Sequence record: PQ464595.1
DNA length: 64,000 bases
Strand: one strand, 5' to 3'
A model generated the notes under the pieces. The model was not told the DNA's origin and ran no database searches. It worked only from the letters and a program-made list of their open reading frames with translations. Position numbers and translations under genes: made by a program. How positions within the stretch are numbered: position 1 is the first letter of the stretch; the number at the start of each line of letters is the position of its first letter. This document shows, piece by piece, positions 14,213 to 35,202 of the stretch.

Positions 14213-14336
14213 TGCGAGAAAGGTTGGACTCGAACCAACGACCAGGCCATTAAAAGTGGATGAAGTATGGTTGCTGAGAAATTACATTACAGTAATTTTT
14301 GGGTTCTACCTGCTCTACCAACTGAGCTACTTTCTC
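14213..14336 (-). tRNA. tRNA-Lys(TTT) interrupted by a 49-nt CAGCAA insert (14260-14308) in the anticodon stem
   Basis: Deleting the insert gives the perfect arm GGCCA-CTTTTAA-TGGCC; acceptor, D and T arms are intact. Confidence 0.75.
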
Positions 14337-22285: not shown

Positions 22286-22404
22286 TGCGGTGAGTACAGG
22301 AATCGAACCTGTGACTTCGGCGTGAAAGGCAATTGTTTGATTGCTGTTAGATTCAGTACTGGAATCCATTTTTTTACGCTATTTTACCACTAAACTAACT
22401 CACC
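22286..22404 (-). tRNA. tRNA-Glu(TTC) interrupted by a 46-nt CAGCAA insert (22331-22376) at 29/30
   Basis: Deleting the insert gives GCGGC-CTTTCAC-GCCGA; acceptor GGTGAGT/ACTCACC, G73. Confidence 0.75.
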
Positions 22405-23627: not shown

Positions 23628-23707
23628 TAGTGCGAGGGGATGGACTTGAACCACCGACACGGAGTTACCCTAAGATAATCTTGCTCTACCATCTGAGCTA
23701 CCCTCGC
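23628..23707 (-). tRNA. tRNA-like gene with aberrant anticodon arm (anticodon not assignable)
   Basis: Perfect acceptor GCGAGGG/CCCTCGC, D and T arms; anticodon/variable region about 5 nt too long with irregular pairing (AGATTATCTTAGGGTAACTCCG). Confidence 0.6.
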
Positions 23708-30881: not shown

Positions 30882-30956
30882 TGTGGCTCATACCAGATTC
30901 GAACTGGTGTGGACAGAGATTTAGAGTCTCCCGCTACGCCTCTCAGCTAATGAGCC
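30882..30956 (-). tRNA. amber suppressor tRNA (anticodon CTA)
   Basis: Cloverleaf GGCTCAT/ATGAGCC, arm GGAGA-CTCTAAA-TCTCT, A73. Confidence 0.9.
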
Positions 30957-34162: not shown

Positions 34163-34401
34163 TTTTATTTCCTCTATTTTGGTTTACTTAATTAATTCCC
34201 AATGCCATAAATTCCCACGTATTGGCATGGTTTCACCAGCATCCAGATAGGTTTCCCCATCAAAAATTACTGGTTGTGAAAGTTCGAATCGTTCTTGGTT
34301 AGTTAACATATAACTACCCTCGATTTCTGTACCTAATGGGATTCGAGCACTATCAGAATATACGCATACAAATTTACCCATATATTTCTCCTTAATTAAA
34401 A

Positions 34402-34655
34402 GGCCGTTGATGGTGTGCTATTACGCCAAAGTCTCTAAGGGTCTATATTAGCATCTACTACAGAAGTCGCACCACACGCCCTTCTTATAATATCAGATAC
34501 ACGCCGCCCGTGTGTAACAAACTAATATAACTGTATCCGGTCTTTTCTTCCCCTGAGCTTATACGTTGGTACTAAGTGGTGTGTTTTCCCATACGGATCG
34601 CTCTCGACACTCATTATATGGTGGCTGCCTCTAAGCCAACATCCCAACAACGGTC
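34402..34655 (-). ncRNA. 23S rRNA GTPase-associated-centre (H42-H44) mimic with a 181-nt insert
   Basis: GGATGTTGGCTTAGAGGCAGCCACCATATAATGAGTG matches recalled E. coli 23S 1055-1091 at 31/37; GCGTAATAGCACAC matches 1091-1104 at 13/14; compensatory pair changes; self-closing stem CCGTT/AACGG. Confidence 0.85.
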
Positions 34656-35202
34656 AGTGTTTGTTACATATGAACCAGTTTGATTTCAACTAGTTCTACT
34701 TTGAAGTCAGGATTTTCATCTTCCCAATCTTCGCCGTATAGACGCACCATTTCATCACGTGCGTCACCTTTATATTTGAACATAGTAGTGAGGAACAGAT
34801 CCGTTGTACGTGAATCGTGTCCAGCCCAATACTTAGTACTGTATTCTTGATCTAATTTCATGCTTGTACCTTGTGCTTTTCATCCATCGCATCGAGGAAT
34901 TGAGCATGAGTATAATACTGCTTAAAATTGTTATACTCGTACTCAAAGTGTTCTTTGTAAATGGCCTTAACACGTTCATCAGTACTACTGATGTAGTTGT
35001 AAGCCGTTTGTATCAGGGCTTTGATCATGGAACTTTTGATATGGAAATAAATCAAATCCTGACCATGTTCACAAATGTACGTTTCAGTACGTTTCATTTC
35101 CTGAATTTTATTATCACGCAGGATGAACTGACGCCCATTCATTTCAAGAGCATTGCCAAGTTCAATCAATGTGTTTACACCGATTTCCATGATCTTCACC
35201 TT

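Follow-up and report, generated by a model that had tools for sequence, protein, structure and literature searches.

We analyzed a window of 64,000 nucleotides (nt) from the 366-kb genome of Erwinia phage Kaldavass (PQ464595.1; window position = record position - 62000), in which a first-pass annotation had proposed a phage-encoded mimic of the 23S ribosomal RNA (rRNA) GTPase-associated center (GAC). Positions 34402-34655 on the minus strand are best explained as the gene for a structured non-coding RNA of ~254 nt that, judging from sequence comparisons, belongs to a phage-restricted family found within tRNA arrays. Homologs in many unrelated large phages keep the helices of the GAC by compensatory changes and retain the co-variation of positions 1072 and 1092, as expected of a selected GAC mimic, and the family is apparently undescribed.

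The minus strand carries all 26-27 tRNA genes of the window as well as the annotated genes flanking the element, and it was therefore taken as the relevant RNA. We compared it directly with the actual Escherichia coli rrlH sequence (L012). The proposed identities of 31/37 to 23S 1055-1091 and 13/14 to 1091-1104 were reproduced exactly, identity over 1051-1091 was 32/41, and the interval 34402-34655 corresponds exactly to 23S-equivalent positions 1044-1115. By blastn, 34611-34644 matched 1055-1088 (E = 7e-6), the sole significant match to 23S rRNA in the 64 kb. The four compensatory changes listed in the first-pass annotation, U-A to A-U at 1082/1086, A-U to U-A at 1090/1101, A-U to G-C at 1054/1105 and C-G to U-A at 1053/1106, are all present in the Kaldavass RNA. 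Three of them recur as covariation among the homologs, and 1090/1101 is U-A in every phage copy. The new closing stem is also present (CCGUUG/CAACGG), and its single pairs vary among C-G, A-U, U-A and G-C in the homologs, with CAUGUA/UACAUG in Yen9-04. Two further proposals held in part. The helix 44 (H44) loop, GUAAUA, is the same as in E. coli, and both A1067 and A1095 are kept, but the H43 loop, likewise described as intact, carries one change, A1070G. The insert said to interrupt H44 is a conserved structured domain of 181-182 nt, depending on how G1091 is assigned, but it lies at 1090/1091 rather than 1091/1092, because throughout the family it is the insert, at its 3' end (UUUG-G), that supplies G1091.

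To evaluate the conservation of the fold, we built one alignment from the concatenated GAC halves of 32 distinct members, with pairs defined by the secondary structure of rRNA and by the junction helix. Paired cells amounted to 84.4%, compared with 66.5% after shuffling, and double-change cells numbered 198 versus 71. The covariation score was 0.481 versus 0.155, with slid controls all <=0.19, and for each of the three measures 0 of 500 shuffles reached the observed value. All GAC helices were kept, with double compensatory changes at 1053-1055/1104-1106, 1058-1080 (UA 21, GC 7, AU 4), 1082-1086 (UA 27, AU 5) and 1092-1099 (CG 14, UA 9, UG 9). The same helices were recovered independently by MAFFT and RNAalifold from 10 diverse full-length members. 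On this 10-member alignment, a 40-pair model gave 96.7% paired cells, double changes in 27 of the 40 pairs, and a covariation score of 0.719 versus 0.182 shuffled (0/500; slid controls <=0.136).

Tertiary features of the GAC are visible in the same 32 members. Positions 1072 and 1092 co-vary perfectly, with C/C in 14, U/U in 18 and no discordant member; C1072 accompanies C1092-G1099 (14), and U1072 accompanies U1092-A/G1099 (18). Conn, Gutell and Draper reportedly described in 1998 that 1072 forms a covarying base triple with 1092-1099 in rRNA, and the pattern in the phage RNAs is what would be expected if the tertiary fold of the GAC is kept. No variation occurs at U1060, A1088, G1093, U1094 or A1098, and 30 of the 32 retain A1095. 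Position 1061 varies among U, A and G in the phage RNAs and is not conserved in rRNA either (PMC6239185). The pairs G1087-C1102 and U1090-A1101 can form in 32/32 members, and both are invariant; U1090-A1101 is specific to the phage RNAs, as none of the five bacterial 23S sequences used for comparison has it. Taken together, these alignments indicate that the fold of the phage RNA, including its tertiary fold, is under selection.

The insert appears from its covariation to be a conserved domain of the same RNA, with helices continuous with H44. In Kaldavass, the order of its parts is the 5' strand of the junction helix Pj, GA, helix Pa, the 5' strand of Pb, a joiner, Pc (9 bp), the 3' strand of Pb, UAGA, the 3' strand of Pj, UUUG and G1091. 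Complementary versions across the family number 8 for Pj, 13 for Pa and 13 for Pc; in these counts, the 3' strand of Pa and the 5' strand of Pc were found partly by complementarity, and the alignment-based counts are relied on instead. The joiner between Pb and Pc reads GAAGGACAAGURCAG in most clades, and the distal domain enclosed by Pc consists of two hairpins in Kaldavass. The insert showed no intron signature, and the element gave no Rfam intron match at E<=10.

The entry of the insert at U1090/G1091 has a sequence pattern that fits a kink-turn (K-turn)-like three-way junction, or k-junction, an arrangement reportedly known from work of the Lilley laboratory. The G and A of the bulged UAGA are invariant (35/35), and the dinucleotide opposite, which follows the 5' strand of Pj, is GA in 31 members and AA in 4, so that its second base is always A. 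A 3-bp helix adjoins, the flanking helices Pj and Pb covary, and the third helix lies on the non-bulged strand; the bulge is just 2 nt.

Three other features considered for the insert were rejected. Mimicry of H97 (23S 2735-2745) by the joiner GGGGAAGGAUAAGUGC involves a 9-mer of a single phage that lies partly in the variable Pc helix. A pseudoknot between GAUCCG, which follows Pa, and CGGAU of the joiner is uncompensated in XbC2 or GAP32. An alternative register of Pj given by RNAalifold for the close clade fails in XacN1; the accepted Pj is 100% paired family-wide.

Some members have a second architecture, here called type-2, in which the same insertion site holds a simple covarying helix (GGGG/CCCC, GGGA/UCCC, AGAG/CUCU and others) followed by UUUG-G1091. 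Type-2 members are copy 2 of phage Milchi, 4_4572, L031 and L169-L172. In Milchi (L008 360-875), tandem paralogs are arranged as a type-1 copy, a type-2 copy and then tRNA-Met. In L031, the type-2 copy directly follows a type-1 3' end, suggesting a Milchi-like layout.

The gap occupied by the element in Kaldavass also holds homologs in the related jumbo phages XbC2, GAP32, CBB, BF, pEa_SNUABM_* and fHe-Yen9-03/04. The split-GAC architecture was further found in unrelated large phages, namely Xanthomonas phages XaC1 and XacN1, Pseudomonas phages Milchi, pf16 and Astolliot, Ralstonia phage RSP15, Acinetobacter phage ME3 and Aeromonas phage 4_4572, and the homologs include Mimasvirus, Eneladusvirus and Lak-like contigs. 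Member RNAs range from ~140 to 430 nt, with 67-370 nt inserted at 1090/1091, and in one member (L018) 37/37 nt are identical to 23S 1052-1088. To survey the distribution, we used the family-specific pattern CCCKTAGAGNNTTTGGYGT. In IMG/VR, it matched 69 viral contigs, mostly true elements, representing ~45 distinct sequences. Across 185,579 bacterial and archaeal species (one genome each), it gave 87 matches, about the chance level. Only 1 of these 87 had the 5' half of the GAC, and it lay on a 14-kb phage-like contig of a metagenome-assembled genome, with an element sequence equal to that of a viral contig. By this pattern, with the cellular genomes scanned for the type-1 architecture, the family is phage-restricted.

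A second rRNA element, the sarcin-ricin loop (SRL), occurs in part of the family. Fourteen of 41 distinct members, spread over four clades, have a distal domain that terminates in an SRL hairpin with the sequence AGUACGAGAGGA, or AUUACGAGAGGA in one clade, and the bulged-G motif AGUA / GAGA tetraloop / GGA lies at the hairpin tip in these 14. AGUACGAGAGGA matches 23S 2652-2665 exactly over 12 to 14 nt, and the stems beneath it differ by clade (GUUCCA/UGGAAU, GUUACG/CGUAAC, CCCGC/GCGGG and CCCGG/CCGGG). The GAC and SRL together form the ribosomal binding site of translational GTPases (PMC8661411). The SRL 12-mer occurs neither in the Kaldavass RNA nor anywhere else in the window. The candidate SRL segments GACCGGA and CGAGAG in the Kaldavass insert were rejected, as the family alignment places those bases in the joiner and in Pj/Pa.

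The SRL-bearing L013 clade is ~70% identical to the element of the Prevotella Lak megaphages. The homologs of Lak-B3 (L176 130-560) and Lak-A2 (L177 130-560) keep the scaffold, with UUUAAAGAGU-UUC-GA... and CCCUUAGAGAAUUUG, and L025 and the Lak phages have AUUAC in the SRL, replacing the bulged G. The Lak-like L013 clade has G1067, as does the 23S rRNA of Hymenobacter tibetensis (L175; Bacteroidota), in the sequence GGCUUGGAAGCAGCC. From this shared G1067, the loops of the mimic may track host rRNA.

The genomic setting is that of an RNA gene. In Kaldavass, two small minus-strand open reading frames (ORFs), 34664-34861 and 34184-34381, leave a gap of 282 nt in which the element sits. On the 3' side of the element come UUUUAAUUAAGGAG and then, at 34381, the start codon of the following ORF. 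GenBank annotates a 30-aa hypothetical protein (XGIBIPCR_CDS0239, window 34522-34614, minus strand) inside the structured RNA. This coding sequence is probably spurious, because the helices of the region covary and 1-2-nt indels occur in it, and a protein-coding reading was rejected. None of the six neighboring ORFs contains a Pfam domain.

Across 38 loci, all 236 of 236 tRNA genes lie on the strand of the element, and in 12 of the 38 a tRNA begins <=15 nt downstream of the closing stem, often 1-2 nt. The pf16 element fills the 253-nt gap from tRNA-Asn to tRNA-Pro, and the XacN1 copy has a promoter-like site of its own and a terminator (hairpin and U-run). The downstream gene varies among the close relatives of Kaldavass, being an ORF of 65, 68, 109 or 157 aa, and CBB has no nearby ORF. 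The tRNA-array context and the variable downstream gene thus suggest a stable RNA gene processed with the tRNAs rather than a leader.

Several other genes were observed in these surroundings. In XacN1 (L009 1-490), a gene annotated as encoding a 2'-5' RNA ligase, a function of the RNA-repair type, lies directly upstream of the copy. Transfer-messenger RNA (tmRNA) genes share the tRNA arrays at L067 2722-3121, L169 5489-5882 and L170 1864-2208. A match to the bacterial small signal recognition particle (SRP) RNA (40.7 bits, gathering threshold 40, model positions 24-66) lies at L057 7587-7630 (-), in the tRNA array that holds an element with GAC and SRL, and may be another RNA fragment of the translation machinery. 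Within the dispersed tRNA array of the window, the tRNAs at 30883-30956 (-) and 23630-23707 (-) comprise one of suppressor type, with anticodon CUA, and one called with a four-base anticodon (uuag). Long Rfam tRNA matches at 22288-22404 (-) and 14215-14336 (-), of 117 and 122 nt, were uncalled by ARAGORN and may contain introns.

Table 1. Parts of the Kaldavass RNA in 5' to 3' order, with window coordinates
Part	Position	Strand	Support
Closing stem, 5' strand, GACCGUU (23S-equivalent 1044-1050)	34649..34655	-	Pairs with 34402-34408; extensive covariation
GAC 5' half: top of H42, H43 with A1067 loop, 1082-1086 hairpin, G1087-U1090 (23S 1051-1090)	34609..34648	-	23S identity, covariation
Pj 5' strand GUC, then GA: non-bulged strand of K-turn-like three-way junction	34604..34608	-	Pj 100% paired, 8 versions
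Helix Pa, GAGC/GCUC, around subdomain A, which ends in conserved CGUAUAA	34555..34603	-	13 versions, all complementary; double changes in 4/4 pairs
Pb 5' strand AGGG and conserved purine-rich joiner GAAGAAAAGACCGGAUACAG	34531..34554	-	First Pb pair covaries: A-U, C-G, G-U
Helix Pc, UUAUAUUAG/CUAAUAUAG, around variable distal domain	34443..34530	-	Double changes in 8/9 Pc pairs
A, Pb 3' strand CCCU, UAGA (bulged, G.A pairs), Pj 3' strand GAC, UUUG joiner	34427..34442	-	UAGA invariant 35/35
GAC 3' half: G1091, H44 with A1095 loop (GUAAUA), top-of-H42 3' strand (23S 1091-1108)	34409..34426	-	13/14 to 1091-1104
Closing stem, 3' strand, AACGGCC	34402..34408	-	Pairs with 34649-34655

As possible functions, the first-pass annotation named titration of uL11 or factors, decoying of ribosome-targeting defenses and docking on ribosomes. 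We consider it somewhat probable that this GAC-mimic RNA is a stable trans-acting decoy of the ribosomal factor-binding site. The RNA would be cut from tRNA-array transcripts, or transcribed alone in some phages, and would accumulate as a stable species. Its two ends would join, rebuilding the 58-nt GAC (top of H42, H43, 1082-1086 hairpin and H44) with its tertiary fold, and the second conserved domain would exit H44 at 1090/1091 through the K-turn-like three-way junction. The product would be a free copy of the factor-binding platform of the 50S subunit, acting in trans and likely binding host uL11 through the GAC tertiary fold. The GAC is contacted by translational GTPases. It is an autonomous Mg2+-dependent fold whose tertiary structure L11 needs in order to bind (PMC6239185), and both rRNA elements are attacked by toxins, Tre23 ADP-ribosylating H44 at 1095-1098 and VapC toxins cleaving the SRL (PMC8661411). 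Candidates for a sequestered partner would include a translational GTPase (EF-G, EF-Tu), RelA, or a defense or competitor toxin directed at the GAC or SRL. In the SRL-bearing relatives, one RNA would display both of the rRNA elements that make up the factor-binding site. A more specific form of this idea, which we put forward tentatively, is that the family represents a modular "ribosome-in-miniature" RNA (GAC, with SRL in some clades), which would bring together on a small scaffold the rRNA elements where translational GTPases dock and are activated, serving as a decoy against host defense toxins directed at the ribosome or capturing EF-G, EF-Tu or RelA during infection.

Several observations weigh against the decoy interpretation. 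Lower H42, the uL10 site, is missing from the phage RNA, and the insert at 1090/1091 could hinder the binding of uL11 or of factors sterically. A stoichiometric decoy must also compete with tens of thousands of ribosomes. Position 1067 is A in 20 of the 32 aligned members, including Kaldavass, and G in 12. At 1058/1080, the Acinetobacter and Ralstonia phages show no host tracking. In the Lak-B3 and Lak-A2 homologs, the loops of H43 and H44 have ceased to resemble rRNA, and the SRL is altered to AUUACGAGAGGAA or AUUACAAGAGGAA; as the scaffold is nevertheless kept, faithful mimicry is not required for the function, at least in these phages. RNAalifold favors pairing C1102/A1103 with UG from the UUUG joiner, an arrangement that covariation cannot exclude because G1087-C1102 and U1090-A1101 are invariant. 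The predicted minimum free energy of the isolated RNA is ordinary (z = 0.27), as expected, since two-dimensional folding cannot score the GAC tertiary fold. Finally, no promoter or terminator of its own is recognizable for the Kaldavass copy, and we infer expression and processing from gene context alone.

The main rival of the decoy is an RNA-only architectural scaffold, in which the GAC-like module would be a compact self-folding block of an ornate RNA whose function (assembly, encapsulation or tRNA-related) is unconnected with ribosomal ligands. The phage tRNA-island niche is common to this family and to the ROOL and GOLLD RNAs (PMC12286853), the most invariant parts of the family are the junction and the joiners UAGA, UUUG and GAAGGACAAG, and some phages carry two copies as tandem paralogs. 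The Lak variants, with their scaffold kept and rRNA-like loops lost, also favor this explanation. We nevertheless regard it as unlikely, given that the loops UUAGAAGCA and GUAAUA or GUAACA, which are solvent-exposed in the rRNA fold, have stayed near-identical to those of rRNA in phages whose hosts are distant, a likeness that a module serving folding alone would not obviously require. In addition, the SRL, a second element of the factor site, appears independently in four clades, and G1067 coincides with a Bacteroidota rRNA state.

Another explanation is an effector that docks on ribosomes or on the tRNA elbow and modulates translation or the maturation or use of phage tRNAs. The tight embedding of the element in tRNA arrays, often only 1-2 nt from a tRNA, and the presence of tmRNA and SRP-like RNAs in the arrays fit such a role, and ribosome pull-down has been reported for GOLLD (PMC12286853). 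However, complementarity of the element to rRNA or tRNA was not found, and the sequence gives nothing that separates an effector from a decoy. To our knowledge, the GAC is known to touch the tRNA elbow (A/T state) on the ribosome only, which also counts against this role, and we consider it improbable.

A cis-regulatory leader, in which a mimic of an rRNA site would let uL11 or a phage protein feed back on the ORF 34184-34381, has position in its favor. From the end of the Kaldavass element to the start codon there are 20 nt, with a U-run and AAGGAG in between, and leaders of ribosomal protein (r-protein) genes that mimic rRNA sites are of a known kind (PMC3616713). This explanation is largely refuted by context, and we give it very little weight. 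The downstream gene is not conserved in close relatives, a tRNA or terminator follows the element in other phages, the neighboring ORFs lack Pfam domains, and neither L10_leader nor any other Rfam leader matched.

The decay of a captured piece of host 23S rDNA, possibly with an intron or intervening sequence, would account for the identity to 23S rRNA, but it is refuted by helices that covary across the family and can be practically dismissed. The rRNA-like sequence amounts to just 47 and 25 nt, with a new covarying stem at its borders, the changes are compensatory and 1072 co-varies with 1092, the element is conserved across phage genera with different hosts, U1090-A1101 is invariant and phage-specific, and the insert has no Rfam intron match. 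Genuine rRNA does occur among phage records. The end of the Paenibacillus phage Pd_22F record (L011, ~83.3-84.7 kb) holds contiguous 23S rRNA, either host DNA or an assembly contaminant, and short unannotated "Listeria/Staphylococcus phage" records of 2.6-3.7 kb that match the H43 segment may be rRNA too.

If the decoy interpretation is true, this would be, as far as our searches reach, the first natural trans-acting RNA that copies a functional center of the ribosome, and it would suggest that phage-host conflict reaches the factor-binding site. The "ribosome-in-miniature" form, if true, would add a new class of viral counter-defense or host-takeover RNA that works by rRNA mimicry. Its members occur widely among large phages, among them jumbo phages that infect plant-associated or clinical bacteria as well as relatives of the gut megaphages, and the family could offer a handle on a long-standing question, the role of unexplained structured RNAs in phage tRNA arrays. 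It also constitutes a natural experiment on the GAC fold, in which a large insertion at 1090/1091 is tolerated and the 1072/1092 co-variation is kept. The RNAs are small enough for direct structural and binding studies.

As for known RNAs, Rfam 15 was searched with the window, with the element itself and with eight relatives, at gathering and permissive thresholds. Apart from tRNAs, the sole match was a sub-threshold hit of LSU_rRNA_bacteria to the 5' half, at 12.9-18 bits against a gathering threshold of 50; no model of an intron, a leader, ROOL, GOLLD or tmRNA matched the element. Full-text searches of PubMed Central and bioRxiv, with subscription-only literature outside their reach, returned no description of the family, in line with the view of the first-pass annotation that no such phage RNA had been described.

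The closest known structure is the GAC of 23S rRNA itself (H42-H44, 1051-1108; the uL11/thiostrepton domain), which has the same helices, hairpin loops and invariant nucleotides. The phage RNA differs from it in being a free-standing gene, in the replacement of lower H42 by a simple closing stem, in the insertion at 1090/1091, and in G1067 in one clade. With the SRL of 23S rRNA (H95, 2653-2667), the L013 clade, L043 and L057 share the exact AGUACGAGAGGA, the GAGA tetraloop and the position at a hairpin tip, whereas Kaldavass has no such element. Isolated GAC and SRL oligoribonucleotides, the "ribosome-in-pieces" of Munishkin and Wool from 1997, are reported to bind EF-G, a biochemical precedent for the recognition of these elements outside the ribosome; those were synthetic, separate fragments, whereas the phage RNA is a natural gene.

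Among non-ribosomal RNAs, ROOL and GOLLD are large structured RNAs of phages that adjoin tRNA islands (PMC12286853). These RNAs of phages and prophages resemble the GAC mimic in being highly structured and adjacent to tRNA islands, but the GAC-mimic family does not match them in Rfam, is smaller, and contains recognizable rRNA modules. The r-protein leaders, such as that of rplJ/L10, are likewise non-ribosomal RNAs that imitate a protein-binding site of rRNA. However, they act in cis upstream of bacterial r-protein genes, and the phage RNA has no link to an r-protein gene. Pseudo-ToxI of phage PhiTE, an antitoxin RNA mimic that defeats ToxIN abortive infection (PMC3475682), would by analogy provide a precedent for a phage RNA decoy that neutralizes a host protein by mimicking a host RNA, although the mimicked RNA and its structure are unrelated to those of the GAC mimic.

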